64,000 nt of DNA, from assembly GCF_001194135.2 (NCBI RefSeq), contig NC_068993.1, positions 63,264,935 through 63,328,934 of the forward strand, written 5' to 3'. How positions within the stretch are numbered: position 1 is the stretch's first letter; each line of letters begins with the position of its first letter. The stretch is from Octopus bimaculoides (Eukaryota). The notes beneath the pieces were generated by a model. It did not search any database, was not told the origin of the DNA, and saw nothing but the letters and a program-made list of their open reading frames with translations. Made by a program: the position numbers and the translations under genes. This document shows positions 12,363 to 38,561 of the stretch, one piece after another.

Positions 12363-12386
12363 TCAGTCTATCTATCTATCTATCAG

Positions 12387-12417
<31 letters not shown>

Positions 12418-13806: not shown

Positions 13807-13873
13807 ATGAGATTGTCAATTGCGTTCGCTCTCCTTTCCCTGTCTCTGTGCCAAGCAGAAAACAATTCTTCAG
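13807..13873 (+). CDS. Cassette A exon: signal peptide MRLSIAFALLSLSLCQAENNSS
   Basis: ATG in aaaATG context, hydrophobic h-region, CQA cleavage-like motif, strong donor TCAG|gtaag; phase 1 is compatible with exon 14230. Confidence 0.8.
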
Positions 13874-14229: not shown

Positions 14230-14355
14230 ATACTGGAAGAATTCTTGATGGAAGCTGGTCAAGTGAAGAAAATCTGGTGCTTACTTTTGACCAAAGAAAT
14301 AACTCTTTGAGTGCTACATTAATTATTTCATGTAGCCGTGGATACAATTTCACAG
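14230..14355 (+). CDS. Cassette A diverged avidin-like domain, exon 1 (TGRILDGSWSSEENLVLTFDQRNNSLSATLIISCSRGYNFT)
   Basis: tttcag|...acag|gtaag, phase 1-1, 126 nt, open. Same length as paralog 28118-28243; LDGSW resembles avidin LTGKW. Confidence 0.85.
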
Positions 14356-15244
14356 GTAAGTTTTAAAATTCTTTAAGCTTGATCACAAGAGAAAGGAACC
14401 AGTCTGCTATTGTTTTACTTCTGTAAAATTAGAAAGGTTTATGGAGATTATTGCTGTCACTCTTAAATGTATCTTTTAATCCTCTTTTATCTTTTACTTG
14501 TTTCAGTCATGTAGATTGTGGCTATGCTGGAGCACCACCTCGAAGAATTTTAGTCAAACACATCAATCCCAGGACTTGTTTTTAAACTTGGTGCTTATTC
14601 TATCAATGCCTTTTGCTGAACTGCTAAGTTACAGAGGTGTAAACAAACCAACACCAGCTGTCAAGTGGTGGTGATGGAGCAAATGCACACACACTCACAC
14701 ACACACACACACACACACACATGATCGGCATTTTTTCATTTTCTGCTTACCAAATCAATTCACAAGGTTTTGGTGAGCCCAAGACTAGCAGTGAGACTGA
14801 ACCTAGAACCATGTGCTTGGGAAGCAACCTACTTACCACACAGTCGTGCCTCTGTCTATGGTTAAGGTCACTGTCAACATTAATGTTTCCTGTAAAAACC
14901 TCATTCATATTCATAGAGTCAACTTTGTCGATGCTTATAGTAAAATCCATGTTAAGTCGAAAAGTAAAATCCAATAAGTGATTTACATCCATCCCCAGTG
15001 CATAACTGGTACTTACATCATCAACCCTGGCAAAACGAAAGGCAAAGTCAACCTCCGCAGAAATGAAGACTTGTTAATGCTCATAGTGAGGTTCTTGTTA
15101 ATGTTTAAAGGCCAAGATCAAAATTTGTATGAAATATGTTTGTTACTCAATAGAAGATGTTTTCATCTAAATTACATTTTATTTTATATCTACGATTTAA
15201 TGAAGCGATTTATCTGGGGCTTTTCCCCCCTTTTTCTTTTGTAG

Positions 15245-15313
15245 GTAACATTACCAACAGCAATACATTTCATCTGTATGGAGCATTCAACACCACGGCC
15301 ATGGCTGTCACAG
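15245..15313 (+). CDS. Cassette A diverged domain, exon 2 (NITNSNTFHLYGAFNTTAMAVT)
   Basis: ttgtag|...acag|gtatt, phase 1-1, 69 nt; paralog 28890-28958 has the same length (13/22 identical aa). Confidence 0.85.
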
Positions 15314-15722
15314 GTATTAACCCTTTTGTGAATATGTTTCTTATGAACTCTTATAATTTTGTTACACAAAATTATGAAGGAAGGAATTGTTTTGTATTTA
15401 TTTTAGAATAAATATTTTATTAGGATTGCATTTGTATAAAAACACCAGAGGTAGTCTCAGAGAGGTTGGCATGAAAAGGATTAAATATTTTGCCATCTAT
15501 GTCGTCAGACAATTGGAGCCTGGTACAGCTCTCCTGCTTGCCAGCTCCTGTCAAACCATCCAACCATGCGGCCATGCTGGAGCATCACCTTTAGACAAGC
15601 AAATCGACCCCAGATCTTATTCTTTGTAAGCTAGTACTTATTCTATCAGTCTCTTTTGCTGAACTGCTAAGTTATGGGGACATAAACACACCAGCATCAG
15701 TTGCCAAATGATGGCAGGGAGA

Positions 15723-15761
<39 letters not shown>

Positions 15762-16934
15762 AACAGCAGACTTAGTTCATAAGATATTTAGTTGTGTCAT
15801 CTTACATGCTTTTCATTAACAATGAAAAAATACCAGTTATATAAGTAAAACCTTATAAGTAGGGTGCATTGTCAAATCTTCAGAGATTGAATAACTCATT
15901 AGTAACCTTTAACATTTATGCTGGACTACTGACAGTGTTACAATATCAACTACCAAAACAACTGTGTTAAATTATGTGAAAGAATTAGCTTATATACTTA
16001 CAGGAAGGATGAAAGTATGTCTTATCATAGAATAGAAAAACAGTATTTACGTAGCCAATGTTTCTATTAAAAGAAGTGATATATAGCTAAAGCTATGAGG
16101 TCTCACAGATCACAGCAAGGTATCCCTATGATCTATCAGTCTTATATGTTGTTTAGCTGTTAAATGTTGTCCATTCATGCTGAATATGTCACAATCTCCA
16201 CCCACTTCCACATCACCAAGCAAAAGATAACAGCTTGACACCATCTTCCATTTTCTCCTAATGAAGAAGAGATGAAATATCGACGTATGGTAAAGTACAA
16301 GTCGTTATGTCTTCATTACTTCTGTTTTCACTCCAATCTTTTAATTTGCACTGGATCGGCTTCTGAACAATTTTAATTTTAATTTTAAGCATCACACAAT
16401 GTTTCTCTCAGACCACAACACTTATGTATGTGTGTGTGTGTGTGTAAACAGGTACACTCATAGTTGTCTTGTCTGACATAAATCAAATCTTTTCTTTGTT
16501 TCTTCATTCCAGTTTATTCTTCAAGATTGGTTTGCAATCTATTTTCTTGTTATGCAATGCTTTATTGATCAAAGGTTAAAACTTAATTCTTCAAGTTATT
16601 GTTTTTCACTCAAAGAAAAACATGACACACAATATGCAGGAATTTTCGATGGTTCTGAGAATTCTTGAAACAAATAAAATACCTGATTATTTTACTTTTT
16701 ATTTTTTTACTAAAAGAAATTTTAATATTAATTTCTTCTCCTCTACCACTTTAGTATAAAACTCAGTTTTCACTAAGTTTCAAGAAAGTAATTAATTTCA
16801 TTTTAAGTCACATGACAGTCTCTTATGACAACTGAAAATTCTGTGAAATAAATAGAATTCTCCAATAACCACGATTGATACAAGATGTTTCCTGCTTTTC
16901 AGATTTCAACAACAAAGTAGTCTCAGCATCTTGG

Positions 16935-16965
<31 letters not shown>

Positions 16966-18234
16966 GTTGTATTGTTCTTTATTTCTACCAGAATACATGA
17001 TATTTACTACAGAACAGTCAACCAGATTTTTTTTTTCTTTACTATAGAAATGGTTGTCATTTAACCTTGAATTTCAACAACAATTTAAAATGTTATCTCC
17101 AAAATTATTTTTATTTCATGTTGTATTGTATTGTTATTTATTCTTAGCAGAATACACAATATTTATCAAGGTGAATTCTGTCCTTGATTCATCATCATCA
17201 TCATCATTATCATCGTCGTCGTCATTTAACGTCCACTTTCCATGCTGGCATGGGTTGGACGATTTGACTGAGGACTGGTGAGCCAGAAGGCGGCACCAGG
17301 CTCAATCTGATCTGGCAAAGTTTCTACAGCTGGGTGCCCTTCCTAATGCCAACCACTCCAAGAGTGTAATGGGTGCTTTTACTTGCCACTGGCATTAGGG
17401 CCAGTCAGGTGGTTCTGGCAATGACCACACTCAAGAGGTTGTTTTACATGTTACCTGCATGGGAGCCAGTCTGGTGGCACTGGCAATGACCACGCTCGAA
17501 TATTGCTTTTCACGTGCCACCAGCACATGTGCCGGTAAGGCGATGCTGGCAACAATCACGTTCAAATGATGCTTTTTATGTGCCACCATGAGCCAGTCCA
17601 TGACCCTGGCAATGATCATGCTTGGATGTGCTTTTAATGTTCCACTGGCACAAGTGCGAATCAGGCGGTGCTGTCATCGGCCACATCAGCGATTTTGATT
17701 TGATTTGATTTCCAATTTAATAAATAACTGCCCCCTATTAGTTACGACGATGAGGGTCCCAGCTGATCTGATCAACGGAACAGCTTGCTCGTGAAATTAA
17801 TGTGCAAGTGGCTGAGCACTCCACAGACACATGTACCCTTAATGTGGTTCTCATGGAAACTTAGTAGGACTTAGGATGTGACAAGCCTTTAAAATACATG
17901 TACTATTTATTTTGGCCAGCTGGGTGGACTGTAACAATGCAAAATAAAGTGTCTTGCTTAAGAACACAATGTACCACTGGGAATTGAACTCACAACCTTA
18001 CAGCCATGAGCAGAATCCCCTAACCACTAAGCCATGAACCTTCACAATTCCTGTCCAATTTAATGCATTAATATTAAATTTCATTTATTTATTTAATTAT
18101 GTATTTCTTTATTCAATCCTTTGATTTTTTAAAAAAATATTTGTAATATTACCATCAGATTAATAATAATTGTCTGAGAATGACATTAGAAAAATAATTG
18201 TATGTTCATTTTTTTTTTCTGTAATTTTCTTCAG

Positions 18235-18410
18235 GACAACTCTATAAGACAAACCAAAATAAGATCTTGAAGATTACATTGATGAAGTACGATTATGCAA
18301 ACTGCACTAATTATACCCCAACAAAAATTTCTTTCCATGAACTGAAACCAAGCCAAAACATTTCTAAAAGCACAGCCACCCAGACATCTTATAACTGGTA
18401 TAATTACCTA
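18235..18410 (+). CDS. Cassette A diverged domain, exon 3 (QLYKTNQNKILKITLMKYDYANCTNYTPTKISFHELKP...YNYL)
   Basis: cttcag|...cta|gtaagt, phase 1-0, 176 nt; paralog 31829-32004 has the same length. G|QL...LKITL parallels avidin G|QC...LKTMW. Confidence 0.85.
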
Positions 18411-18526
18411 GTAAGTAATATAATGATTTTTATTTCTCTAATTATGCTGATGATTTAATAATTTGGTAATAATTCTTATAGCATGTTTTAGCAGCAGACT
18501 CAGTTTCTTCCAAGATGATGATGATG

Positions 18527-18559
<33 letters not shown>

Positions 18560-18563
<4 letters not shown>

Positions 18564-18735
18564 TATTGATAAATTTGAAGACAGAAAGTGAAAAAAGATG
18601 GCTATGGATGACTAAAAGTGATTTAAAACTGGAAACGGAGGCTCTAATCTGTGCTGCCCAAGAGCAAGCACTAAGAACAAATTACATCAAATACAGAATG
18701 GACAACACATTATTAAAAAATGGTGACATACACTG
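18560..18735 (+). mobile_element. RLE-type LINE fragment in an intron of cassette A
   Basis: EKRWLWMTKSDLKLETEALICAAQEQALRTNYIKYRMD, the conserved post-RT segment of this group. Confidence 0.75.
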
Positions 18736-18760
18736 AATTAGTTTCTGTTGTTTTCTTCAG

Positions 18761-18772
18761 AATCCCTAAAAG
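18761..18772 (+). CDS. Candidate 12-nt micro or terminal exon of cassette A (AAT CCC TAA in phase 0)
   Basis: ttttcttcag|aatccctaaaag|gtttga; positional and sequence counterpart of 32792-32801. Confidence 0.35.
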
Positions 18773-19037
18773 GTTTGACTACAGAATTGCAAATATAACA
18801 AATTCCTTATCCTTTATATAGTACCTTGCCCCCATCTGTCACCTGTGGTCATGAACTCCACTTCCAAAAGGTACCAATTTATATCTCAATATAAATATAG
18901 GGATGTGTAGCTGTGATATTGCAGCACGTGAATGGCTGTGCTCAGTGTGTGTGTATACAGAGATTAGAGTTTGTTTTTAAAATATGAGTAAAACTAAGAA
19001 TGTCCGTGTGTCTCAGTGAGTAACTATAACAATTCAG

Positions 19038-19153
19038 GTTTAATAAAAATAATGTGGAGAATTCCAATGTTTGCCAAAGCTAATCTATTTTCTTCTGATT
19101 CTTTTTCATATTTTTGGCCGATATGTGGTCATTTGAGAATTTCAAACAAGAAG
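19038..19153 (+). other. Conserved candidate alternative first exon upstream of avidin domain A (GC donor)
   Basis: Colinear with 33035-33138; ends GAAG|gcaagt versus GAAG|gtaagt in B; phase 1 matches exon 19497. Confidence 0.45.
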
Positions 19154-19291
19154 GCAAGTATGACAATAATTCCTGAGAATAATTATTTTCTCCATTCAAC
19201 CACTCTCTTTTTTTCACCCTTAATTTCTTACACTCTCTATTTATCTTTGTATGTGTCTGTCTCTCTTTATCTGTATGTCCTTTTATAAGTC

Positions 19292-19338
<47 letters not shown>

Positions 19339-19496
19339 CTATTTCAATTCCTTTTGATCACTCTCCCTATTTTTTATTTTTTAAAATACCAGTTATGATG
19401 TTACATTGAAACAGGTTTGTCTGCCATACATGTCCTGCAATCACTAATCAAATTACAACATTAATCTTTGATGAGTATATTTATCTGTCATTACAG

Positions 19497-19583
19497 ATGC
19501 CAACTGCAGCCTGGAAGGTACTTGGTATAACGATCTCGGTTCTACAATGGTCGTAAAACAAAATGAGGATGGTTTACTGGAAG
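19497..19583 (+). CDS. Avidin domain A, exon 1 (ANCSLEGTWYNDLGSTMVVKQNEDGLLE)
   Basis: ttacag|...gaag|gtgag, phase 1-1; near-match to chicken avidin CSLTGKWTNDLGSNMTI. Confidence 0.92.
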
Positions 19584-20220
19584 GTGAGAAGAATATATTT
19601 TCAAAATATCAAAATGTAGATTATTTCAGTAGTCATTCAAATTTGTATCAGACCATTTTTTAAAACTTATGTTATTTTAAAAGGATTTGTTTGTTTTCGC
19701 TCTTGTTTCAATATGTTTTGTGTTGGGCACAAATTTGTAAACTCATCCTCAGTCAAATCTAGCTTTGGTTCTTCCTGTTAAATTCTGGGACAACATTCCC
19801 ATAAGTTGGTATATCAGGCATCACAGAGTGAGGTTCTACATATTTCTTCAGCCTTCTCAATGCAGTCACTAAACCCTCTTCAAATAAACATCCTAATCAA
19901 ATTAAGAAAAAAAGGTAAAAAAAAAAAAAAGGAAAGGGTCACATACTTTGGATTCCAAAAGAATAATGTAATTTGATTGGTTACAGGCCTGACTTGAACA
20001 TTTCACTGACCACAGACAGAGCTAACAATGCAAAATATATGTATTTTATTTCTAAAAGCGTACCCTGAATTGATACTAAGCCTTCAGTTCCCTCTACAAG
20101 GGTTAATGGTGTACAATCTGTGTGCTGAAACAGTCTATGTTATTGAACATAACATCTGCATAAGCGTTAAGGTCTGCAGACCATTAAGGACACTAATTTG
20201 GTTATTTTATTTCATTAAAG

Positions 20221-20361
20221 GTCAATTCCGCACTTCTGTTGAACGTTTCAATGGTTCATCTGGAGGTTTTAAAGCTAATATTTATGGTGCCATCAGCCCT
20301 TATTCTGTCTTCAGTTTTGGTCTTGTTTGGAATGAAGGAACTTCAATCTCCAGCTTTGTTG
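20221..20361 (+). CDS. Avidin domain A, exon 2 (QFRTSVERFNG...FSFGLVWNEGTSISSFV)
   Basis: ttaaag|...gttg|gtgag, phase 1-1; parallels avidin GTYITAV...FGFTVNWKFSESTTVFT. Confidence 0.92.
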
Positions 20362-20577
20362 GTGAGTAGCAATAACACACCACATATTTGATTTATGTAT
20401 GTTCACATGTATGCTTATGTGCGTGTGTGTGTGTGTGTGTGTTCAATTCATCATGTATATTTAATTCCTCACATCTTACAGAAAGCCAAATTGCGTCCAT
20501 CCATTATTTCTCTTGCTGGAACTTCACAGATAGAGACTCTAAGTTTCATGTTTTACTAATCCTCAAGGAACCAAATA

Positions 20578-21340
20578 CAAGGTTGAGTCAAAAAGTAATG
20601 ATCCATTTTGTTTAGGACAGGTATAATTAACAACACAGGAACATGTATCATACATCAAAATGAAGCTGGTCCTCTGTGGATTACATCCCTACTTCTCAAC
20701 ATAGTCACTGTTTCTCTCAATAACAATGTTCCACCTTCGAATGAGAGCATGCATCCCTGCCTCGTAAGATTCTGTTGACTGTTCTTTGAGCCATTTCTTC
20801 TCTACAGTTTTCACTTCCTCGTCACTGGAATATTTTCCTTTCAAACCCTCTTTCATGGGGCCAAAGAGATGATAGTCTGAAGGCGCTAAATCTGGCGAGT
20901 ATGGAGGATGTCATAAAGTTGCCCACCCGAATGAGGTGATTGTCTCCCTTGTCCTGATGCCTGTGTGTGGTTGAGCATTGTCATGCAGAAGGAGGACATT
21001 GTCGATTGGCAAGTTGGGTCTTACTCATCGAATTCTTGCTCTGAGCCTCGTCAGGGTCTCACTGTAAGTCCCAGAGTTTACTGTTTTTCCTTTTGGCAAG
21101 AAATCGACCAGAATGACACCTTGAGCATCCTAAAAGACAGTCGCCATGATTTCTCCAGCTGACTTTGCATCTTGAATTTTTACAGTGACGGTGACATAGA
21201 GTGGCGCCATTCCAATGACTGCCTCTTTGATTCCAGTTCATAATGATGAACCCATATTTTATCACCTGTTACGAGCCTTCGAAAAAAGGTGTTGTCTCTA
21301 TGACTTTGTTCGAAACTTGACAAATAGTGACAGTAATTTT
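20578..21340 (-). mobile_element. Mariner (DD34D) transposase remnant, 3' half, intronic
   Basis: Minus strand has RRLVTGDKIWVHHYE, LLLHDNAQPH and HPPYSPDLAPSDYHLF. TA followed by a TIR-like caaggttgagtcaaaaagt at 20576-20596. Stops and frameshifts. Confidence 0.9.
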
Positions 21341-21838
21341 TGTGAGTGTGTGTATTTAAATACAAGTAAATTTTCTTGTTGAAGGCATGAAGCTTAGTGG
21401 TCAGCTCACTATTGTAAGGTCAAGAGTTTGGTTACCAGCAGCATGTTGTCTCCTTGAGCAAGACACTTTATTTCCTGTTGCTCCAGTCCACTCAATTAGC
21501 AATAAGGAGTAGTACCTGTATTTCAAAGCATCAGTCTCATCACATTCTGGTACATGCTGAATCTCCCTGAGAACTATGTTAAGAGTATGTGTGTCTGTGG
21601 AGTACTCAGCCACTTGCACATTAATTTCATGAGCAGGCTGTCCTATTGATAAGATCAACTGGAAGACTCAATATTGTAACTGATGGAGTTCCCATAGCGT
21701 AGTCTTTAAACATGTTTGTTGCCGAAATGTTTTTGAAATTTCTCAGAGTGGAAAGGCTTTTTGTTAGCAACTTTCAAGCTCATGTCTGAATATACAGATG
21801 CACCCATTCATGCATGTTTTTTTTTGTCTCTTCTCCAG

Positions 21839-21964
21839 GTCAGTGTATCCCTTCATCGAACAATGCCACCTTCTTGAAAACTCAGTGGACAATGCTTGTG
21901 GGACAGGAGACCTTTGATACCAGCTGGAAAGCCTTTTACAATGGAATGAACAATTTCTACAAAG
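21839..21964 (+). CDS. Avidin domain A, exon 3 (QCIPSSNNATFLKTQWTMLVGQETFDTSWKAFYNGMNNFYK)
   Basis: ctccag|...aaag|gtgag, phase 1-1; parallels avidin GQC...LKTMW...WKATRVGINIF. Confidence 0.92.
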
Positions 21965-22639
21965 GTGAGATGCATATGATGTTACCTGCAAGGATGGGTG
22001 GAGAGATGGATAAGTACGTGAATAGGGGGGTGGATTTATGGGTAGGTGAAGGGATTAATGTATGGATCATTAGGTGAATGGATTATTAGCAGGTGGGATG
22101 AGAGGAAGAATGGATGCATGAGTAGTGAACAGATTGACGGTTGGGAGTTGTGTGGGTGGGTAGGAGAAATGTGGTTAAAAGGGTAGATGATTGGATGATT
22201 GATTGGTGGGAGTGATGAGTGGAGGGATGAATGCATTGAATGATGGTTGAATGAATGGACAAGTGGTATGGTGCCTGGTTAGATTGACATTTTGACAGAT
22301 GGTTTATTGAGTGGATGGTTAGATAAATATCACATGGATGGATTGGTGGTTATACACCTGGTTGGTAAGGAGATGATCAAATAGACAAATCTAGTCATCC
22401 ATACAGGTATTCATGCATGGCCTACTCCCCATTACCCCTGCTGGATGTGCAAAGCCATGCAGATCCCGCCTCAAGAACCTGCTCTGCCCTCTCATCTCCT
22501 CTCATAAAGATGACTCCCACCATCACCCCCTGAGATTGTTGTCCTGAGAACTACATGGCGACTGCAATAGCGCAGATGCCATGCAAAAAGCAACTAGTAT
22601 GCATTGTAAAGTGTGTGTTTGTGTATATATATATATATA

Positions 22640-22960
22640 TGCTGAGAGACCCCCTTCGGTCATGACTGACCATGGGATTGCACCTAGAAAGTTACCTTCC
22701 CAGGCACAAGTCCAGGCAAGGTCGTTTATGGAAGACCAGCAGTCGCCAATGCATACTGGTCTCCCATCTCCATGCCACCAGTGTTATCCAAGGGAAAGGC
22801 AAAGGGGCCGATGCAGCTTGACACCTGTGACGTTGCAATTCATTTCTACAGCTGAGTGAACTGGAGCAACGTGAAATAAAGTGTCTTGCTCATGAACACA
22901 ACATGCAGCCCAGCCCAGGATTTGAACTCACAACCTCACGATCGTAAGCTCGATGCTCTA
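22640..22960 (-). mobile_element. tRNA-derived SINE, second family (plus-strand copy at ~50240-50600)
   Basis: Reverse complement of tagagc...gagttcaaatcc...cttgagcaagacactttatttcacgttgctccagttcactcagctgtagaaatg... Confidence 0.7.
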
Positions 22961-23003
22961 ANNNNNNNNNNNNNNNNNNNNNNNNNNNNNNNNNNNNNNN
23001 NNN

Positions 23004-23035
<32 letters not shown>

Positions 23036-23205
23036 TTAGGAAGGGCATCCAGCCATAGAAACCATGCCAGACCAGACTGCAGTCTGGTGCAGTTCCCCAG
23101 CTTGCCAGTTCAAGGTCAAACTGTCCAACCCATGCCAGCGGGGACAATATATATATGTAAAACTTCTGGAAAGTGTTACAGATTTTTACAGTTCCTAGTG
23201 ATGGA

Positions 23206-23925
23206 TTAGATCTGCAGTTTTCGAATTAGCCTTCTCCTTTCTGGTTTTGAGAAGCCTAATTTCTCAAGATTGGTATTTAGGCAGTGTGTTACATATCCCT
23301 GGGCCCCGATAGTTACAGGTATAAACCTGAACTTGTGTTCTGAATAGAGTAACTGCAGATTTCTCAATAGTTCAGCACAGGTGTTCTCTTTTTCACTGAT
23401 CTTTAGCTTTAAGTTAACATCCGCTGGGCAGCTGATTTGCTCAACTGTGCACAGTTTCTCTTCTCTATCCCAAATCATTATATCAGGTCTGTTGTGCTTA
23501 CATTTTATTGAGGTCTTCACTGGGACATTCCACCAGCACCCCATTTTATTATGAGTGGCTATTGCTTCTACCATATTGTGGGTTCTTATTTCTTTGTCCT
23601 TGGGATTATCCTTCCAACAGATTTCATTATTGAGTGTCCTAGCTACAACGTCAATGTCTCATTGGTAGATAATACCGTGATGACATTTTCAGACAACTTC
23701 TTATGATGCGGCTGATTATCATCCGTGTGAACTCCACAAAGTCTGCATTGGTTGTCACATTTTGGTGCTTTTCCTGTATCTCTGTCCCTTTTGTGCATCA
23801 GGTGCTTGGTTGATATTTCCTGTTCCTGAATTGCAAACACATACCCTTCAAAGTGGGAGATAGTAATCCGGTTATTGGTCCATGGTAGACCACTTTGTAT
23901 GTATGTATGTATGTGTGCATTCTGT
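23206..23925 (-). mobile_element. RLE-type non-LTR retrotransposon 3' region (Zn knuckle + restriction-like endonuclease)
   Basis: FEGYVFAIQEQEISTK, CRLCG...H and NRPDIMIWDREEKLCTVEQISCP...FIPVTIGAQG (PD-(D/E)xK type); disrupted. Confidence 0.85.
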
Positions 23926-24021
23926 ATGTGCATGTATCCATTTTTGTATGTATGCATTCCGTGTGTATAAAAATATATATCACATGATTTAATCATAACT
24001 GATGACATTATTTTATTCCAG

Positions 24022-24038
24022 AGTTAATAGAGGAATAA
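24022..24038 (+). CDS. Avidin A terminal exon (E-LIEE*)
   Basis: ttccag|ag tta ata gag gaa TAA; paralog 38545-38561 shares gaggaataaaacagaagaa; AATAAA at 24206-24211. Confidence 0.75.
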
Positions 24039-27000
24039 AACAGAAGAATTATAAAATATCTCAGAGAAATTATGTTACCAGAACCTTCCATATTTGAACT
24101 TAATTTTGAATTTAGATTTTAATTAATCTATCTGTCCAACAATTTTATCTGTTGAAAAAAACAAATTTATCTTTTGCAATTAATCATTATTTAGTCTTTC
24201 TCAAAAATAAACTTGTTATACAATCATAAATCCAGTGTTTATCTCTTCTAGTGTTCCTGTTACAGAATACATGATGCCATTTGCAAAGTCATTGGTTGTC
24301 ATAGAGGTATCCTGTGAGGCTACGTCAATAGTAACATTGCAAATAAACAAAGACACTTTCTCAGTCCTCGTCCACTTTACACAGTGGAATGTCCAAAGTG
24401 TGACAGCCAGAGGGTGAGTGGACTGTACCAGTACTCAGCTGGTACTCATTTCAGCTGAAAAGATTGGAACAACAAAACATGTAGAACCTTGCTCAAGGAG
24501 ACTTTGGTTCAGGTACTTCACAGAGAGAGAGGGTTGCTACCAAACCTGGTTTCAATTACATTCTGATCAATTTGGATCAATTGAATGCTTTTGGTAGCAT
24601 TGCTACTTGACAGTTATTCTCAGTGGAGTCAGTTTGCTCCCATTTTCAGAGACAGGTTCTATATTCCTCAAGATTTGTCAAAGAAGATTTTTGAGTGAAA
24701 AAGAAATTTCAATATTACATGCAATTAAAGCAGCACGCTGGCAGAACCGTTAGCACACTGGGCAAAATGCTTAGTGGCATATAATCCGTCTTTACATTCT
24801 GAGTTCAAATTCTGCCGAGGTCGACTTTGTCTTTCATCCTTTTGAAGTTGATAAAATAAGTACCAGTTAAACACCGGGGTCGGTATAATTGTCTTCCCCA
24901 CTCCCGAAATTTGCTGACCTTGGGCTAAAATATGTAACCAATATTACATGCAATTCTATGTTATAGAATCAGTTAAGTACCAAACCAAATGTCTTGTGGC
25001 ATTTTGCTTTATCTTGTAGTGGGGAAAGTTTAGCAAAAGATGTAGAGGTAGCAGACGAAATAGGCGTGTGAATGACATCAAAGTAAAACAATGGGAAAGC
25101 ATCAGATTGTGGCTTAAATAATTTATTTAATTGATGCTTGCTTTTACTTGTTGTATACCCCAGAAAATTCACTACGTGACGTTACCAGCTTGCTTTGAGT
25201 TGGTGAGGAAGACAATAAACAGGGGAAATACTGTGTCGATGTGATGTGGTAGAACCGGGCATGTTTTGTGTCTGTGTGTGCGTTGGTCATTTGGTCGTGT
25301 CAGTTTATGTTCTGCGACTACTACTGTGTTGGGTCGTTCATGCTGAATATGTGGCTCTGTATTGCCTGCTTGACTGGCACAAGTTAACTGCTGGCTGTCT
25401 GCTTGGTGATGGCTCTCTGCAGTCCCTTGATGGATTGCTGTATTTATAATGGTCATGACAGCTAGAAGGACAGACATACCACAAGAGTAATTACTACTTA
25501 TGTAGGTCGCCTCCTGTCCACTTGAACCTTAAATGACACAGCTCAGGTCGTAGGTCAAAAGGAAATCTATCCACCACTTTTTGACAGATCAAAGAAATTT
25601 CTTTCCCGCCTGTATGGTCAGTGGTGGATCAGATGAGTGACAATCCTTAGATTCAGTTTCAAATCTCAGCTTGGAAAAAGGAAGTGTTAGTTTTTACAAT
25701 CTCCTTTACATTCTAAGTTCAAATTCTAATGAGTCAAATTTGCTCCTTCCAGTCTTGGGTGGCGGGGCCAATAAAATAAATATAAGTCAAATACTGAGAC
25801 AGTATAATCAAATATACTTCATGAACCCCAAATTCTCAAATTTCTGGTCTTTATCCTTGTGAAGAACCAATATTAATAGCTAAGAAAGTGTTAAGACATC
25901 TTTGATGATAACATATGTTTTAGAATTAAAAACCATTTTAATATAACTGGAGAATAAACAAGTGAATGAAAAAATGAATAAGAAAGAAAACAATACCTAC
26001 CCTAGAAAATGAAGCAGGGTGGTAGAAAATGTGAGAAATGTTTATATGTTGGTCAATTGATAATACAACAAACTGGCAGAATTGTTAGCAGACCATGGAA
26101 AATGCTTAGCAGCATTTTGTCTGTCTTTAAGTTCTGAGTTCAAATTTGCCTTTAAACTTTTTGGGGTTGATAAATCAAGTACCAGTTGTGTACTGGGGTT
26201 GATGTAATCGACTTATCCTCTCCCACTGAAATTGCTTGCCTTGTGTCAGGATTTGAAATCAATATATTGGTCAATTGGCATATAGAGAAATCGAGATGTA
26301 AGGTAATGTGCCAACAGGAATGGAACATACTTGTAAGTTCTTCTATAGAATTTACTAGGAAGCAAGGAATATAGCAAAGATGAAGAATAAACATCAAGAT
26401 TCAAGTGGTTCGAGAATAAAAGATTTTTGGTTAGAGGAATGTGTGTAAGATGTTTGCTTCATAAACATGTAATTCTGAGTTTGACTTCACTTTGGGACAC
26501 ACAGAGAAAATGTCTCCAGCCATAGCACCAGGCTGACCAAAGCCTTATGAATGAAATTATGTGGAAGCCTGTCCAATGTATATGTGGGTGGGGTTACTGG
26601 TGAGCATGAATAGTTCTGATGGAGCAGAAGAATCGGTAAGGCAGAAGCCATTTTACAGTGCATGTGAGAAATCTAGATGACACAAGCATCTGCATTGCGG
26701 CAAAGGTCTGATACCATCGTGCAATAGTCCTGCTAATGTTTTTGTGATGCAATGAAACATGACAGTAAAGAAGGCTAAAATGCTGGACACATTCCACCAA
26801 TGTTGCCAACTGAAAATCCTCATTGTTACCTGTGAAACAAATACCTGTTGCTGCAAAATATCATTGTGCTGCAGAGGTTCTACATCTGTTTTCCATGCTT
26901 AGTATATTTATGTGTGTGTGTGTTTATCTGCATTATTCTTAGAAGACCTACAAAATATCTTCACAGAGATCCTTTCATCTTCAGCTAAGATACAAACAGA

Positions 27001-27898
27001 AAAAATAGCAGAGTCATTCTTAAGTAATGAAAGTAAAATTGTATGGAGGTTGGTAAGTATGGAGTAGGTAAGTAGAAAAGCATGATGAGATGTATGAGAA
27101 TAGTCACAGAGTTGAATGAATGATGCTTGTGTGAAAGTAAGTTTTTATATTTATGAGTAAGATGACCAAAACACTGATTATATAAAAAAGCTTTGATGAG
27201 ATTTTTGAAAGATAACATGTGATGGATGCTAACATTATAGGGCCAAAGTGTAGATCACAAACGGTAGATAAATTAAGCAGTGAATTAATAAAATAGTTAG
27301 TGCCAGATAGATACCTTGTGGTATTTGTTATGGTCCTATGTTTTCTGAGTCGAAATCCTACTGAGAAAACATGTGGCCTTTGATAAAGAAAGTACCTCAG
27401 CAAGTACAGAAGTGTCTTCTCTCCCTCTCTCTTTCTCTATTTGTCCCTCTATCTCACTTTCTGGAAGACACCAGCCAGGGTCAGAACTAGATAGGGATGG
27501 GTTTCACATGCTATGAGCCAAAACAATGCTTTTATAATCCCAAGGTAAGACAAATGAGAAAATACAACAGTGAAGTGGGTAAAAAAACAGAAGATCCAAG
27601 AGTTATGTTTAGAGATCAGACAATAAGTGAAATATTGCATCTGTTTGTGATTATCGGAATGAACTGCAGCAGATTGTTGAAGTTAGTATACGGATAAATT
27701 TAATTCTTCTATCAAATTACAAAATGGTACAGACATACTAATCAGAACTAATTGGTAATAATACAGTTCTATATTTAAGAGATGAGGAATTATGTGCATT
27801 ATTTACATTTAATATATACACACACATATACATACATGTATATTATTATGTGCATTATTTACATTTAACGGATATTTGTTTTCCTCTTGTTTGCTGTT

Positions 27899-27944
27899 AA
27901 CACAACGTTTCCGCTGATATACCCTCCAGCCTTCATCAGGTGTC
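27899..27944 (-). ncRNA. Minimal type I hammerhead-ribozyme-like motif (Penelope-type), probably decayed
   Basis: Minus strand GACAC-CTGATGA-A-GGCTG(loop)CAGCG-GAAAC-GTT-GTGTT: stem I GACAC/GTGTT, palindromic AACGTT stem III, one mismatch at the base of stem II. Confidence 0.6.
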
Positions 27945-28117
27945 TTGGGGAAATTTCGAATCTGGGTTCTCATTCCTAAGGTATTTTTCAATGTTGTTAT
28001 TTATTATTATTATTACTAAATGTAAATAATATAAATAATGTAAATAATACTGTAAATAATGTAAATAATGTGATTGGTAATAAGTTGACTAAACAAAACG
28101 ACTGTTACATTTTACAG

Positions 28118-28243
28118 ATCCTGAAGGAAGTTTCGCAAGGATCTGGTCAAGTGAGGAAGGTATAGGAATCGAATTCAAAGGACCCAATCATGCACTGATG
28201 GCTGAAGTTGTTTTTCCGTGTGGACGACAATACAACGTTAAGG
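28118..28243 (+). CDS. Cassette B diverged avidin-like domain, exon 1 (PEGSFARIWSSEEGIGIEFKGPNHALMAEVVFPCGRQYNVK)
   Basis: ttacag|...aagg|gtaag, phase 1-1, 126 nt; WSSEE, C and YN are shared with 14230-14355. Confidence 0.85.
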
Positions 28244-28889
28244 GTAAGAATATATGTTTGCTTCTTAGCTTAAGTTACAAAGGAAATAACAAGATTTGGG
28301 AGTCATTCTTTCTTGGCTTATGAATTCATCTGAGATGTGGTTATTTGCTGAAAAATAAAGAATATCTTTGGTAGCATGATGGTATTGTCTTACTCTGCAA
28401 TACAATTGAATTGTCTCAGTGACCAGGTTATAGATGTACAACACGGCACCTTAACACTTTATACTATTCAAATAATAGCAAGAAATAAATTAAATGCAAA
28501 TATGATGGCACCTATCTATTAAATGGTCGTCATGGTTCTTTCACATTAAAGAGAATTGAAAACATCTTGTTTGTGCGAGTGCAGTCAGTCAAAATCTCTA
28601 TAAGGGAGATGCAAGTAGACTTCAGGGGTCAGCAGGAGAGAATGGACACCATTTTGGGGCCGTCCTCTTAATGGCTTTACAGCATACTTGACCCACCCCA
28701 CTCCCTGAAATGAGGCCCCTGACTGGATCAAATGACTAGTGTTTGAATATGGTAAAGCTTTGAATCAGAAACAATTCTTTGATAGAAAGATATCTAAGAA
28801 ATGTCTGTTTTTACCATTCTGTTATATTATTTGAATAAAGGATATGGATTTGAGAAAGTGATTTATTCTTCATTAATTCCTTTTTGTAG

Positions 28890-28958
28890 GTGCCATGACC
28901 AACAACCATACATTCTACCTGTATGGAGCAAACCAGACCACTGCCATTGGAGTAACAG
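28890..28958 (+). CDS. Cassette B diverged domain, exon 2 (AMTNNHTFYLYGANQTTAIGVT)
   Basis: ttgtag|...acag|gtatc, phase 1-1, 69 nt. Confidence 0.85.
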
Positions 28959-30215
28959 GTATCAGGCATTTTGTTTTTCGCTTTTTTCCGTAATTCCAAG
29001 AGAAGAATATAGCTGCTCTTTTAAAGACTAGCCTTCACACAAATGCCAAAAAAAGGAATGGCATTAAAAAAAAAGAAGGAAAAACTGAAATGTGTGTGTG
29101 TGTGTTTTACTCTTTTACTTGTTTCAGTCTTTTGACTGTGGCCATGCTGGAGCACCGCCTTTATGTGTGTGTGTAACAAATGCAAATGTAAAACATAAGA
29201 AATGATTAAGTTTTAATATACAATACGAGCAAATGCTGGAATGCAATGTGTGTGTGTGTATATATATATATGCGTGTATGTATATATATATATGCGTGTA
29301 TGTATATATATATATGCGTGTATGTATATATATATATGGTTTAGTATTACACTTATCCTGTTTATTTCACCAGTTTACAGATGGTGGAGTAGCATTTAGG
29401 TAAGACTTGACAACAACCACTTGTAGGTCAAGCAAACATTAGGGACATAATCATTGGATTCTTCAAAACTAGCCATCTATGATGTTACGGTCATTTCTAC
29501 AGAGATTACTGCCAGCACTGATTTTTTTGCTGCAATATTTCATATCCAGACATCAGATGTAAACAAACAATGAGACCGAAGACAAAGGTCTCTATAATTT
29601 CTGTAGAAATAACCTTAACAAAATAATGTAAAGAGCACTGCTAACACAGTAGAACACGGTGTTAACTTACAAAACCATTTAATATACTTTATGGTTGCAT
29701 AACGAAATACCAAGTGCTTGGAGGTCATTAAAGTCATCTGTGAGTTCTAAATACTCACAGGCTCTACATGAAAAATAAGAATTCACTTTTTCTCTGAGTA
29801 TAAACTATAGCACAGATTCAGAAAATATTCTGTATTCTGGCCAGAAAAAAAAAGAAGCTATTTAAGGAATGACAAATAATCAAATATCTTGTGGGATGAC
29901 AGCATAATTTCATTGTCGAAATTATGCTGCAGACAAGTAATTTATATTGATCATACTTATTGGAAAAATTCAATTTATATCAGCTGCTTATAACTGGTGG
30001 TTTTTTTTTTCATTAAACACAAAATTAATTAATTGCCATTTTTCTGGGAATTCATTATATTCAAACTTGATTTGATAAATTATAGTAAAATATACCCAAA
30101 TTGTCTAATAATGTCAAATATTCTCAGATAGTTCAACAAGAAATTATACATAAAAATAATTAGTTTAATGTGTGTGTGTGTGTATGAATATGAGTGTGTG
30201 TATACACACACACAT

Positions 30216-30248
<33 letters not shown>

Positions 30249-31828
30249 CACATACATATATATCCATGTGTGTATGTGTATGTATGTATGTATGTATGTA
30301 TGTATGTATATATATATATATATATATGTATGTATAGGTTACCTGTGATTTTGTATGTGATATTCTAGGGTAAATATAACTGAATCACTTTATAAAAATC
30401 AGATAAATTTGTATGCCCCAAAGAAATAAGTTCTGCTACTTTAGTCTGGGAGCCTTGTATGTTTAGGAGAGGCATGGGCAAACTTTTTCCAGAAGCAGAC
30501 CACATGATACATGGGTTCATCATGTGGCAGGCCACACTGCTAGAAAAACTGGAGGCAATTTCTTTCAGAAAGTGTGATGGGCCATAGGTCTCTGACAAAT
30601 GTTTTAGGAAATATATTCATTCAACCCTCACTGTGATTAATATGAAGGATACATTTAAGGCAGCAAGCGGGCAGAAACATAAGCACAATGGGTAAAATGC
30701 TTGGTGGCATTTTGTCCTTCTTTGCACTCTCTAGTCAACTTGGTCAACTTTGACTCTCATCATTTTGGGGTCAATAGAATAAGTACCAGTTGAGTACTGG
30801 GGTCAATGTAATCAGCTTACCCCCTCTCCCAAAATTACTGGCGTTGTGCCAAAATTTGAAATCAATATGCTTTGTGCATCTACTTATAAAACAAATGCTC
30901 CAACAGTTACACTCAGGAGTATAGAATTTTTTAAAATGATATTTGTTTATAAAGTGTATTGTTTATGTGTTTCAATTAATTTTGATAACATCAATAAATT
31001 TAGAGGGATTTAATTAAGTAATTTTCTCATTATTTCTCTGATGTCTGCAAATGTAATTTAGCAAAAGTACCTAAAATGAAATTATTACAGAAAGCTTAAA
31101 TTCAGAGACAAACACTTTAAAATGGTTAGTTTTGTTTACCGGAACCAGAGATGGTCTCAGAAAAGTTAATATCAAATTGTAATGAGTAAAGGCAATAATT
31201 ATCAGGTATGGGGTGTAATTAAATATGAATCTAATTTGGGGGTGGGGTGGGGTTTACCTGGCAAAGATCTGGGTGGACAGCATAACGAATGCGATCAATA
31301 GTTATAATAGATTAATGAGAATTTTACCTCCTGTTTACAAATGTCATTGTGTACTAGTAAAATGAATAGTCACCAATATTTATAGAATATTATAGCTTAC
31401 AGCTACAAACCTACTCTGAAAGCTTCAAAAAATAAGTTCCATTATGAAGTCAAAGAGAATCAGAAGCCTTTTGGAGGACAACATTTAAAAGTTTTGTGGA
31501 AATGTAAAAATCAAAAAACAAACATCTGACAACAGATATTTCTATTTGAAAAAAATAAAAAGTTAAAAAAAAAAACTACTGGACCGTATTGTGATAAATA
31601 TTGTGTATTCTGCTAAAAATAAGGAAGAATAAAAGACTCTAGATCAAGATATGGAATCAAATGATTTCTGGGATGACATTTCAACAAAGTTGCTGAAATC
31701 TAAAAATCAGAAGACATCTTTTATGAGACTGTCACATTAAGTTGACAACATGCTATCAATAAATATTGTCTTAAAATAAAAAAAATACTGACAATTTTAA
31801 TTTTATTTTATTTTGCAATTTTCTTTAG

Positions 31829-32004
31829 GACTTTTCTTCATAACAAAGAACGGTCAACTCTTGAAGATCACACTGGTCAAGTATGATTATGCAAACTGCA
31901 GTGAATATACTCCAGCAAAAATATCTTCACATGAATTGAAACCAACTCAGACACTTTCTTACAACTCTAACCTCTGGATGTATCATAATTATGACGATTA
32001 TATA
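31829..32004 (+). CDS. Cassette B diverged domain, exon 3 (LFFITKNGQLLKITLVKYDYANCSEYTPAKISSHELKP...DDYI)
   Basis: ctttag|...ata|gtaagt, phase 1-0, 176 nt. Confidence 0.85.
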
Positions 32005-32123: not shown

Positions 32124-32154
<31 letters not shown>

Positions 32155-33034: not shown

Positions 33035-33138
33035 ATAAAGTTGTTAGAATTTTACTCTTTACCAACGTTAATCTACTCTCTTCTGATTCCTTTTCATAAT
33101 GTTGGCTGGATTCTGGGACTTCCGAGCTTATAATGAAG
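33035..33138 (+). other. Conserved candidate alternative first exon upstream of avidin domain B
   Basis: Colinear with 19038-19153; ATG at 33099 gives MLAGFWDFRAYNE, then GAAG|gtaagt (phase 1). Confidence 0.45.
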
Positions 33139-35451: not shown

Positions 35452-35538
35452 CGTCTAGTTGTAATCTGAACGGAACTTGGTACAATGAGCTGGGCTCTTC
35501 AATGACTATAACACAAAAGGATGATGGTTCACTGGAAG
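35452..35538 (+). CDS. Avidin domain B, exon 1 (SSCNLNGTWYNELGSSMTITQKDDGSLE)
   Basis: ttacag|...gaag|gtaag, phase 1-1, 87 nt, same length as in A. Confidence 0.92.
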
Positions 35539-35749
35539 GTAAGAAAAATCCATTTTTCAATATAATATAACATAGAATATTATTGTATTATTGTTTACAT
35601 TATCTAAATTCAGTACCAGACCATTTAACTCATGAATTTATTGTATTATTTGAAATGTTTTTGTCACAATGTTTTTGAAAAACAGTAAAAGCAGTGTCAT
35701 CAAAGTATTCATAATTTCATTAATTTTGGTTAATTTTATTTCATTGAAG

Positions 35750-35887
35750 GTCAATATAACACTGCTGTTGAACGTAGCAATGGTACGTCTGGAGGCGGTA
35801 AAGCAGATCTTCATGGCACCATCAGTTATTCAGTCTTTAGTTTTGGTGTTGTTTGGAATGAAGGATCTTCCATTACTGTCTTCAGTG
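35750..35887 (+). CDS. Avidin domain B, exon 2 (QYNTAVERSNG...FSFGVVWNEGSSITVFS)
   Basis: ttgaag|...agtg|gtgag, phase 1-1, 138 nt (one codon shorter than A). Confidence 0.92.
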
Positions 35888-36233
35888 GTGAGTAGTAGTA
35901 ACAAAAGTATACACGTATATGTATGTATGTTATACACACATACATATATACATAAATAAATAAACAAATAAATAACAACAGATGGATAATGTGTCAATAC
36001 CCTACAACTGTTTCCAATGAATTTTTAATTGATTAACAGAGATATTACATCATTAGAAAAAACAGTTACATCAAGTGAATACATGAAACACAACATTCAA
36101 AAGTATTCAGAGCCAACGGGATGTGGATATGCATATANNNNNNNNNNNNNNNNNNNNNNNNNNNNNNNNNNNNNNNNNNNNNNNNNNNNNNNNNNNNNNN
36201 NNNNNNNNNNNNNNNNNNNNNNNNNNNNNNNNN

Positions 36234-36273
<40 letters not shown>

Positions 36274-37820: not shown

Positions 37821-37946
37821 GTCAATGTATCCCTTCATCAAGCAATGGCATTGAGTTGAAAGCCCACTGGTCATTGGTTGCAGCCCAAAGATCTGTTGAG
37901 ATCAGCTGGAAAGCATTTTACACAGGAATGGACAATTTCTACAAAG
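37821..37946 (+). CDS. Avidin domain B, exon 3 (QCIPSSSNGIELKAHWSLVAAQRSVEISWKAFYTGMDNFYK)
   Basis: ctgcag|...aaag|gtgag, phase 1-1, 126 nt. Confidence 0.92.
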
Positions 37947-38544: not shown

Positions 38545-38561
38545 ATTCTAAAGAGGAATAA
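38545..38561 (+). CDS. Avidin B terminal exon (D-SKEE*)
   Basis: tttcag|at tct aaa gag gaa TAA; paralog of 24022-24038. Confidence 0.75.

Follow-up and report, generated by a model that had tools for sequence, protein, structure and literature searches.

The window, a 64,000-nucleotide stretch of the Octopus bimaculoides genome, carries on its + strand 16 exons spanning 13807-38561 that join into an uninterrupted ORF of 533 amino acids, in which a signal peptide is followed by module A, avidin A, module B, and avidin B (Table 1). The encoded protein appears to be secreted, with a mature form of ~511 residues in which the pair of a degenerate avidin-fold module and a canonical avidin domain occurs twice, and it is probably N-glycosylated.

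Gene model and probable one-chain architecture

The initial annotation spoke of “upstream modules,” but the modules and the canonical avidin domains are most likely more than neighbors and constitute a single four-domain polypeptide. A protein of Argonauta hians (GAB1601784.1, 536 amino acids), whose locus also has 16 exons, is collinear exon for exon with the O. bimaculoides ORF at 48% identity, and all four domains are joined in its model. In the 16-exon model, every domain unit is in phase 1 at both ends, and extra signal-peptide exons, which were looked for upstream of avidin A, module B, and avidin B, were not found. Counting against the one-chain reading are the acceptors of both O. bimaculoides mini-exons, which are ttg| without AG, the GC donor of mini-exon A, and the fragmentation of the locus in existing annotations into P0001, P0003, to which avidin domain B belongs, and P0004. 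The A. hians counterpart of mini-exon A, IHMYETNEPPQE, has a ttg| acceptor as well, and the O. vulgaris model P0004 begins with MLAAFWDFRAYSQ, which is spliced to avidin exon 1.

Table 1 Exons, motifs, and assembly gap of the O. bimaculoides locus
Feature	Position	Strand	Remarks
Exon 1	13807..13873	+	Start codon and signal peptide MRLSIAFALLSLSLCQAENNSS; phase-1 donor CAG|gtaaga
Module A exon 1	14230..14355	+	126 nt; predicted strands 1-4, invariant W10; LDGSW 14244-14258; IISC 14322-14333, Cys35 codon 14331-14333
Module A exon 2	15245..15313	+	69 nt; NITNSNTFHLYGAFNTTAMAVT; strand 5 and half of strand 6; FHLYG; phase-1 G| intron at end
Module A exon 3	18235..18410	+	176 nt; second half of strand 6, strand 7, loop 7-8, strand 8, linker; LKITL 18267-18281; KYDYANC 18285-18305, Cys89 codon 18303-18305; HELKP 18336-18350; phase-0 donor CTA|gtaagt
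Mini-exon A	19117..19153	+	37 nt; ADMWSFENFKQE; phase 0 to phase 1; non-canonical ttg| acceptor, GC donor
Canonical avidin domain A	19497..21964	+	Exons 19497-19583, 20221-20361, 21839-21964; Pfam PF01382 E 2.8e-21
Assembly gap	22962..23003	.	42 N, then (TA)n run; intronic, between avidin A and module B
Module B exon 1	28118..28243	+	126 nt; DPEGSFARIW...; ARIW 28135-28146; VFPC 28210-28221, Cys codon 28219-28221
Module B exon 2	28890..28958	+	69 nt; AMTNNHTFYLYGANQTTAIGVT; FYLYG
Module B exon 3	31829..32004	+	176 nt; LKITLVKYDYANCSEYTPAKISSHELKP and linker; LKITL 31861-31875; KYDYANC 31879-31899, Cys codon 31897-31899; HELKP 31930-31944; phase-0 donor ATA|gtaagt
Mini-exon B	33105..33138	+	34 nt; AGFWDFRAYNE; ttg| acceptor, canonical donor
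Canonical avidin domain B	35452..37946	+	Exons 35452-35538, 35750-35887, 37821-37946; PF01382 E 1.7e-25
Terminal exon	38545..38561	+	(D)SKEE and stop codon

The non-canonical mini-exon acceptors also favor another gene model, in which module A is a stand-alone product of 161 amino acids, P0001, with a hydrophobic C-terminal membrane or GPI anchor, and the avidin domains are separate genes. UniRef A0A0L8HYN0, the N terminus of which is identical to exon 1, is exactly that model, and its read-through tail, LVSNIMIFISLIMLMI, is hydrophobic. This tail is, however, merely a read-through beyond a consensus gtaagt donor, and it is not conserved: the corresponding read-through of module B, like that of O. 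vulgaris, is VSYLIISI (8 residues) and then a stop, while A. hians unit 2 stops two codons past the donor. Considering also that the downstream domains have no signal-peptide exons of their own, that the A. hians model unites the four domains, and that the mini-exon of its unit 2, TSFWDTPLNNK, has canonical splice sites including a tag| acceptor, we regard the stand-alone product as quite improbable.

The assembly gap lies in a 6.15-kb intron that runs from the end of avidin A exon 3 at 21964 (phase-1 donor AAAG|gtgaga) to the start of module B exon 1 at 28118 (phase-1 acceptor), and no coding sequence of the 16-exon model overlaps it. Zero residues are missing from the spliced junction, FYK-D-PEGSFARIW, when compared with FYR-E-SERGFSSSW of A. 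hians. Since the gap is intronic and the junction is complete, no frame is broken and no exon is hidden by it.

Sequence features of the canonical domains and the modules

Canonical domains A and B clearly belong to the avidin/streptavidin family (PF01382). Alignment with chicken avidin and streptavidin revealed that they retain N12, L14, S16, Y33 (F in domain A), T35, V37, W70, S75, F79, W97, W110, and N118, and the C4-C83 pair is present in both. They resemble the tetrameric biotin binders chicken avidin, AVR4/5, and zebavidin (PF01382 E 1e-21 to 1e-25; AVR4/5 E 3e-15), and the closest solved relatives of domain B are AVR4/5, zebavidin, and avidin, with E values of about 1e-15 to 1e-13.

All of the module motifs named in the initial annotation were found on the + strand, and the F.LYG strand proposed there corresponds to FHLYG and FYLYG in the middle exons (Table 1). 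Modules A and B are true paralogs, given that their last exons match in tblastn with an E value of 5e-16, that their identity is 49-55% depending on the alignment used, and that their exon lengths are the same (126/69/176 nt). The proposed conserved cysteine pair holds in 4/4 known modules, two from the window and two from A. hians, where the invariant cysteines are located in loops 3-4 and 7-8; W10 is invariant in all four as well, and Y54, Y84, Y86, H100, and E101 are among the other invariant residues of the four-module alignment. In module A, Cys89 in loop 7-8 is within an N-C-T sequon, and the linker encoded by exon 3 is aromatic and rich in sequons. Purifying selection on the modules is similar to that on the canonical domains: dN/dS is 0.39 between modules A and B and 0.36 between avidins A and B, and between O. 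bimaculoides and O. vulgaris it is 0.34 for the last exon of module B and 0.40 for avidin B, with dS of 0.21 for both. The O. vulgaris ortholog of module B exon 3 is 81% identical (tblastn).

The losses that had been claimed for the biotin site were borne out. Each module has one tryptophan versus four in each canonical domain, and W70, W97, and W110 therefore cannot be present; L81 of the modules sits where avidin has W97, and the places of N12, L14, and S16 are occupied by S12, E14, and L/I16. The C4-C83 pair is also absent, and the modules have a different cysteine pair, with one member in loop 3-4 and the other in loop 7-8. Because biotin-contact residues including all three binding-site tryptophans are lost, the modules should not bind biotin, and we infer that they are “biotin-dead.”

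The proposed avidin-like spacing, when taken as sequence similarity, did not survive, being no better than chance (Smith-Waterman z -0.8 to 1.6 against shuffles). None of the four modules matched any Pfam family, PF01382 included, at E<=10, and hhalign of the modules with an avidin alignment gave a probability of 0.15%. When 1.84 billion proteins were searched exhaustively by profile, the modules turned up in O. bimaculoides and A. hians only, and a PDB profile search with the modules returned only weak RCC1-repeat noise. Matches to RCC1/Kelch β-propeller repeats were marginal (RPGR whole-sequence E 0.012 and per-stretch E 4.7; Kelch protein E 0.49), and a propeller is impossible for the module because the unit is 104 residues. 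Homology between the modules and avidin cannot be demonstrated by any sequence comparison. The UniRef name of A0A0L8HYN0, “Reelin domain-containing protein,” would make the module a Reeler (reelin N-terminal type) domain. This reading, for which the database name is the only argument, is hardly credible, as PF02014 had no match at E<=10 in 4/4 modules and no reelin-type structure appeared among the 50 Foldseek matches listed.

The exon structure provides another line of comparison. The shared G| intron that the initial annotation pointed out is present: the phase-1 intron of the modules (VTG|Q and VTG|L) agrees with that of the canonical domains (FVG|QC and FSG|QC) in both phase and position in strand β6. 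The first intron of the modules is off the canonical position, in β4 rather than β3, which counts against descent from avidin.

Predicted fold of the modules

Module A was modeled by AlphaFold2 from a four-sequence alignment, and the five models obtained had pLDDT values of 57 to 75. The best one (pLDDT 75.2, pTM 0.68) consists of 8 up-and-down strands forming a barrel, and all 50 Foldseek matches listed against the PDB were avidin, streptavidin, shwanavidin, hoefavidin, rhizavidin, AVR, or zebavidin, with TM scores of 0.57-0.67 by query length and 0.53-0.72 by target length; the best match listed had an E value of 2.4e-4, TM scores of 0.66/0.72, and an rmsd of 3.0. No lipocalin, FABP, or other calycin barrel was among them. 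An avidin-like fold had been proposed on the understanding that a structure other than an 8-stranded barrel would speak against it, and the prediction yielded an avidin-like barrel. The 8-stranded model and the Foldseek matches therefore support the reading of the module as an eight-stranded antiparallel up-and-down β-barrel of avidin topology, at the moderate confidence of a shallow-alignment model. In the model, where strands 7 and 8 span residues 75-85 and 95-104, LKITL..KYDYANC..HELKP falls on strand 7, loop 7-8, and strand 8 as proposed, and this region is, as had been claimed, the best conserved in the four-module alignment.

It is conceivable, although rather improbable, that the modules are an unrelated, octopod-specific small β domain and that the avidin-like model arose by chance or through AlphaFold2 being biased when alignments are shallow. 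The absence of significant similarity in the Pfam, hhalign, PDB profile, and Smith-Waterman comparisons, the four sequences behind the models and the spread of their pLDDT values, and the unshared first intron are in line with that idea. On the other hand, the Foldseek matches listed were exclusively of the avidin family, and avidin is not a default output of AlphaFold2: in a single-sequence model of a di-domain (pLDDT 33.7), even the true avidin domain was unfolded. The strand-6 phase-1 G|Q intron common to modules and avidin, and the finding that, in both species, the modules occur only fused to genuine avidin domains and in alternation with them, also argue against it.

The avidin 3-4 loop is ~12 residues long. 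In the model of module A, loops 3-4 and 5-6 are shrunk to 2-3 residues, with 3 residues in loop 3-4, a shortening in keeping with loss of the biotin site. These dimensions bear on whether the modules might be avidin-fold (calycin-like) barrels re-tooled for another small ligand, which would give the protein two kinds of sites. The predicted barrel and a purifying selection comparable to that on the live domains are compatible with such a function, and the invariant Y54, Y84, Y86, H100, and E101 could line a pocket. In avidin, however, loops 3-4 and 5-6 form the lid of the pocket and its wall, and their reduction would leave little cavity; moreover, the invariant cysteine pair is at the open end, plausibly closing the barrel, and the sequence suggests no candidate ligand. 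Re-tooling thus seems unlikely.

Modules as possible built-in subunits

The explanation to which we give slightly better than even chances is that the locus is one gene, composed of a degenerate module plus a canonical avidin domain repeated twice, in which the modules are old, diverged, non-binding avidin barrels acting as built-in pseudo-subunits. The two modules would be copies of the avidin barrel, very old and much diverged, that serve as non-binding partners to the two live domains, filling the positions of other subunits in an avidin oligomer to make a one-chain pseudo-oligomer with two biotin sites only. A putative intradomain disulfide, Cys35-Cys89, might span what is left of the barrel's mouth and thereby hold loop 7-8 and the 3-4 turn together. 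The idea of pseudo-subunits is supported by where the modules are best conserved, namely in strand 7, loop 7-8, and strand 8; in avidin, it is there that the 1-2 and 1-3 contacts between subunits are made.

More tentatively, and more probably wrong than right, the octopod protein might be a natural single-chain pseudo-tetrameric avidin, with two live barrels and two dead, disulfide-plugged ones, that is monomeric and has exactly two adjacent biotin sites. The four barrels of one chain would be packed like the avidin tetramer, the live pair would exchange W110 across a 1-2-type interface, and the dead pair would supply 1-4-type structural interfaces only. The dead subunits might have drifted past sequence recognition so that they now appear as an orphan domain.

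Comparison with known systems clarifies what is and is not shared. Like avidin, the modules have a predicted 8-stranded barrel, W10, and the strand-6 intron; unlike avidin, they have no sequence match, one tryptophan rather than four, and very short loops 3-4 and 5-6, and the octopus protein is predicted to be a four-domain single chain in contrast with the avidin homotetramer of single-domain chains. The short-loop dimeric bacterial proteins shwanavidin, rhizavidin, and hoefavidin are compact barrels and, for the module model, among the closest structures listed (TM 0.57-0.67), but these proteins are high-affinity biotin binders with a PF01382 match, whereas the modules, judging from their sequence, have neither property. 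The avidin-like domain of sea urchin fibropellin is recognizable as avidin by sequence and lies C-terminal to EGF repeats, and we know of no live avidin partner in its chain; the octopod modules differ in being past sequence recognition and in alternating with live avidin domains. As recounted in PMC10336842 from Yanai et al. (2005, Protein Sci 14:417), this C-terminal domain of an extracellular mosaic protein oligomerizes and does not bind biotin. It is the precedent for a “dead” avidin scaffold. By sequence, the octopod modules lack the binding residues, and what supports their homology to avidin is the predicted fold and one shared intron. Engineered dual-chain and single-chain avidins (PDB 2c4i; PMC3105096, PMC3029397) and single-chain dimeric streptavidin (PDB 6s4q, 6s50) have several barrels fused in one polypeptide, which allows for unlike subunits and a lowered valency, the same design principle as that proposed for the octopus protein. 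They are, however, laboratory constructs, which in the case of avidin consist of circularly permuted, (near-)identical subunits, whereas the octopus fusion is natural and unpermuted, and half of its subunits are degenerate.

If the favored explanation is true, the protein would be a natural avidin with subunit asymmetry and reduced valency hard-wired into one chain, an arrangement that engineers created on purpose in dual-chain and single-chain avidin and for which no natural precedent was found in the literature searched. The modules would, moreover, neatly exemplify how a domain that looks like a lineage-restricted “orphan” can be a known fold whose sequence has diverged too far to be recognized, with the evidence of descent preserved by gene structure, that is, by the shared intron and the alternation with the parent domain. 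The gene model corrects three fragmentary or misnamed annotations, the “Reelin domain-containing protein” A0A0L8HYN0 and two 105-amino-acid avidin fragments, and provides a defined protein for studying how biotin is sequestered in the eggs or the immune defense of cephalopods.

Organization of the locus and its relatives

The window is eukaryotic DNA with a GC content of about 36%, many microsatellites and 11 runs of N. A tblastn search with chicken avidin and the module exons as queries laid out module A, avidin A, module B and avidin B on the plus strand, and the motifs by which the initial annotation had described the modules were all found on that strand and at the positions it gave. The locus thus consists of a [module + avidin] unit duplicated in tandem. 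Reading of the splice sites yielded 16 exons (13807-38561) that carry an open reading frame of 533 codons without interruption, and every domain unit both starts and ends in phase 1, which is the expectation for an in-frame tandem duplication. Further signal-peptide exons were sought 5′ of avidin A, module B and avidin B, and none with a plausible or usable donor was found. The frame contains 17 N-X-[ST] sequons, and the encoded protein is secreted and probably N-glycosylated. A short frame at 26373-26390, ending in SKDEE and a stop codon, is similar to the terminal exon and could be a relic terminal exon of the first unit or a chance occurrence; the AG upstream of it is in the wrong frame.

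Features of the locus and of the module model (slashes in sequences mark splice or cleavage points; residues in module numbering)
Feature	Position	Strand	Exons or content	Basis
Signal peptide	first in ORF order	+	MRLSIAFALLSLSLCQA/E...	splice-site reading
Module A	14232-18395	+	3 exons, 126, 69 and 176 nt	tblastn (position); splice-site reading (exons)
Mini-exon A	after module A	+	37 nt	splice-site reading
Avidin A (canonical)	19505-21963	+	3 exons, 87, 141 and 126 nt	tblastn (position); splice-site reading (exons)
Module B	28117-31977	+	3 exons, 126, 69 and 176 nt	tblastn (position); splice-site reading (exons)
Mini-exon B	after module B	+	34 nt	splice-site reading
Avidin B (canonical)	35451-37945	+	3 exons, 87, 138 and 126 nt	tblastn (position); splice-site reading (exons)
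Terminal exon	38545-38561	+	17 nt, (D)SKEE and stop codon	splice-site reading
ttg/ acceptor sites, window	19105-19117; 33093-33105
ttg/ acceptor site, A. hians locus	14322-14334
ttg/ acceptor site, O. vulgaris locus	about 9995-10007
Module strands 1-8	8-11, 17-23, 26-33, 37-45, 50-57, 60-70, 75-85, 95-104			AlphaFold2 model

The N run at 22962-23003 falls in a 6.15-kb intron that runs from the donor of avidin A exon 3 (21964) to the acceptor of module B exon 1 (28118), and the junction after splicing, FYK-D-PEGSFARIW, is collinear with FYR-E-SERGFSSSW of Argonauta, with no residues missing; therefore, the gap affects neither the frame nor the exon content. The gaps at 33493-33657 and 36138-36233 are intronic as well. 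The former, in the intron before avidin B, is flanked by the same sequence on both sides (33353-33492 and 33728-33867; identical translation, LPLANRTQSCVDKPAGGDVLLGLKATVTSTPRGQPHLSGNILHFIY), a repeat that looks like an assembly duplication. Elsewhere, an intronless 158-aa ORF on the minus strand (44635-45111) has a CS domain (PF04969, E 9.8e-14) and resembles a gene, or a retrocopy, for a co-chaperone of the NudC-domain or p23 type. ORFs of 120-140 aa (23206-23574 and 23643-24008 on the minus strand, 40378-40800 on the plus strand; for example, ...RLYDACVRTAMLHGSETWAV...) have no Pfam match at E ≤ 0.01 and look like retroelement fragments, the first two being located directly after the 22962-23003 gap, inside the long intron. 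Coding-like low-complexity runs just upstream of the start codon (13583-13744) and just downstream of the last exon of module A (18454-18588) are poly-His/Asn/Ile from trinucleotide microsatellites, and the (ATT/AAT)n run downstream of module A recurs after module B (32050-32240).

The mini-exons are unusual in that ttg/ stands in place of an AG acceptor in mini-exons A and B of O. bimaculoides, in mini-exon B of O. vulgaris and in the unit 1 mini-exon of Argonauta hians. The O. bimaculoides mini-exon A, in addition, has a GC donor (AAG/gcaagt). The unit 2 mini-exon of A. hians is fully canonical, and its phase-0 donor CTT/gtgagt, acceptor tag/ and donor G/gtaagt confirm the design in which the mini-exon leads from phase 0 to phase 1. 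Canonical AG acceptors were rejected for the mini-exons, as the upstream AG sites that were read run into stop codons or, for copy A, use a frame that is closed in copy B. TG can serve as a 3′ splice site, although rarely, and the ttg/ acceptor may be a conserved site of this kind or may mark a weak, regulated exon.

When 1.84 billion representative proteins were searched exhaustively with a profile of both modules, two alone were retrieved, A0A0L8HYN0 of O. bimaculoides (161 aa), to which a spliced query from the window is 100% identical, placing the window in this species, and GAB1601784.1 of A. hians (536 aa). Neither that search nor word-indexed searches returned module sequences from squid, cuttlefish or other molluscs. 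In the A. hians protein, a signal peptide is followed by two successive module-avidin pairs; it can be aligned over its full length with the 16-exon model at 48% identity, and maps on its own locus to the same 16 exons, both mini-exons included. A0A0L8HYT7 of O. bimaculoides and an O. vulgaris model are 105-aa avidin B fragments; the latter begins with MLAAFWDFRAYSQ, corresponding to the mini-exon joined by splicing to the first avidin exon, and skips most of avidin exon 2 (GGG/QCIPSS). The orthologous O. vulgaris locus (OX597826.1; genes at 1-9711 and 10001-18525) is annotated with a 230-aa avidin-containing model and this 105-aa model, both of which are fragmentary. Thus, the present annotations of O. 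bimaculoides and O. vulgaris appear to split one gene. The single-module A0A0L8HYN0, with its hydrophobic C terminus, might instead represent a separate, membrane-tethered module gene, but that C terminus is read-through beyond a consensus gtaagt donor: the corresponding frame gives eight residues (VSYLIISI) and a stop in module B and O. vulgaris, and A. hians unit 2 stops after two codons. As none of these conserves the tail, the idea that the main product is a single module held by a GPI or TM anchor was rejected, and separate tethered genes are very improbable.

Despite the 16-exon, four-domain layout common to both species, the paralogs within O. bimaculoides (modules 55% and avidin domains 61% identical) are closer to each other than to the A. 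hians sequences presumed to be their orthologs (43-48% and 56-58%), a pattern that points to gene conversion between units or to rapid evolution in Argonauta. Comparison of the A. hians flanks with the window gave dispersed-repeat matches only, and the papers searched contained no mention of the gene or of any cephalopod avidin.

Fold of the modules

The avidin-like spacing ascribed to the modules by the initial annotation is without statistical support, as four sequence tests were negative. The four modules had no Pfam match at E ≤ 10, whereas the canonical domains matched PF01382 with E 2.8e-21 and 1.7e-25; hhalign of the four-module alignment against an avidin alignment gave a probability of 0.15%; Smith-Waterman comparison with five avidin domains stayed within shuffle noise (z -0.8 to 1.6); and a profile search of PDB sequences with the module returned RCC1-repeat matches only, which were marginal. 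RCC1 and Kelch repeats were rejected as noise.

The predicted structure, set beforehand as the test that could refute the barrel claim, is an eight-stranded avidin-like barrel. AlphaFold2, run on the four-sequence module alignment, placed eight consecutive strands (pLDDT 75.2, pTM 0.68), and a Foldseek search of the PDB with this model gave 13 matches at E ≤ 1e-3. All 50 listed matches belong to the avidin family at 8-16% identity, including avidin 5hlm_B (E 2.4e-4, TM 0.66/0.72, rmsd 3.0 Å), shwanavidin, streptavidin, hoefavidin, agroavidin, rhizavidin, AVR2/4 and zebavidin, and no lipocalin, FABP or reelin-type fold is among them. The Reeler domain that the UniRef name of A0A0L8HYN0 implies thus lacks both a Pfam match at E ≤ 10 and a fold match among those listed, and the chance that the label is right is negligible. 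Without an alignment, AlphaFold2 left even the genuine avidin domain of a di-domain unfolded (pLDDT 33.7), a run that is uninformative on domain packing and means that the program gives no avidin answer by default. With the negative sequence tests on one side and the Foldseek matches on the other, it seems rather improbable that the fold is unrelated or that the model is an artefact; prediction supports the fold interpretation.

Three independent features hint at common descent: a phase-1 intron that splits G/Q midway along strand 6, structurally equivalent in position to the canonical G/QC intron and in keeping with the shared position proposed earlier; the invariance of W10 in the modules; and the fact that modules are known solely where they alternate with real avidin domains. 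In contrast, the first intron differs in place, falling in strand 4 of the module and in strand 3 of the canonical domain. We consider it likely that a single four-domain protein contains the modules as degenerate barrels of the avidin fold.

Biotin site, cysteine pair and selection

The reported absence of N12, L14, S16, W70, W97 and W110 equivalents (chicken avidin numbering) holds for the modules, which have S12, E14 and L/I16 for the first three, L81 (module numbering) for W97, and a single Trp, W10, compared with four in each canonical domain at the W10, W70, W97 and W110 positions. In the AlphaFold2 model, the lid loop 3-4, which carries Cys35 at the tip, is shortened to three residues and loop 5-6 to two. 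Neither Cys35 nor Cys89 varies among the four modules, and Cys89, located in loop 7-8, is in every case part of an N-C-[ST] sequon, so the cysteine pair noted at the outset is conserved; Cys89 is also kept in O. vulgaris, as seen in the last exon of module B. Loops 3-4 and 7-8 are at the same, normally open, end of the up-and-down barrel, and a Cys35-Cys89 disulfide would draw loop 7-8 across the barrel mouth.

The canonical domains retain the C4-C83 pair and most biotin contacts and are probably real biotin binders. The Tyr33 position is Phe in avidin A (19497-21964) and Tyr in avidin B. Affinity may not be the same in the two live domains, which may also lack the classical 1-3 contact. At the avidin A equivalents of the 1-3 interface residues M96, V115 and I117 there are Q, N and M.

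The dN/dS values of the module paralogs (0.39, dS 0.86) and avidin paralogs (0.36, dS 0.66) are comparable, as are those between O. bimaculoides and O. vulgaris for the module B last exon (0.34) and avidin B (0.40), with dS 0.21 each and small counts; thus, constraint on the modules is similar to that on the live domains. Between the paralogs, the linker that follows strand 8 evolves in a nearly neutral way (0.92).

Possible role of the modules

The best conserved module surface comprises strand 7, loop 7-8 and strand 8, in agreement with the earlier choice of LKITL..KYDYANC..HELKP as the most conserved stretch. In avidin, this region makes inter-subunit contacts. A re-tooled ligand pocket, for which the strict conservation might speak, is unlikely. 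The conserved strand 7-8 surface, the avidin-to-module connection of only about 10 residues and the aromatic-rich module-to-avidin linker of about 35 residues favor a role as pseudo-subunits: each of the two live avidin domains would be preceded by a dead avidin-fold barrel, and these built-in barrels would fix the quaternary structure and limit valency to two. This scaffold mechanism is a tentative proposal that we hold with less than even confidence. Fibropellin, whose avidin-like domain is reported to be non-binding, is a natural precedent for a dead module, and dual-chain and single-chain avidin are engineered analogues of the proposed four-domain chain. The fold itself is known; the architecture and the extent of dead-subunit divergence in these octopod proteins appear to be new.
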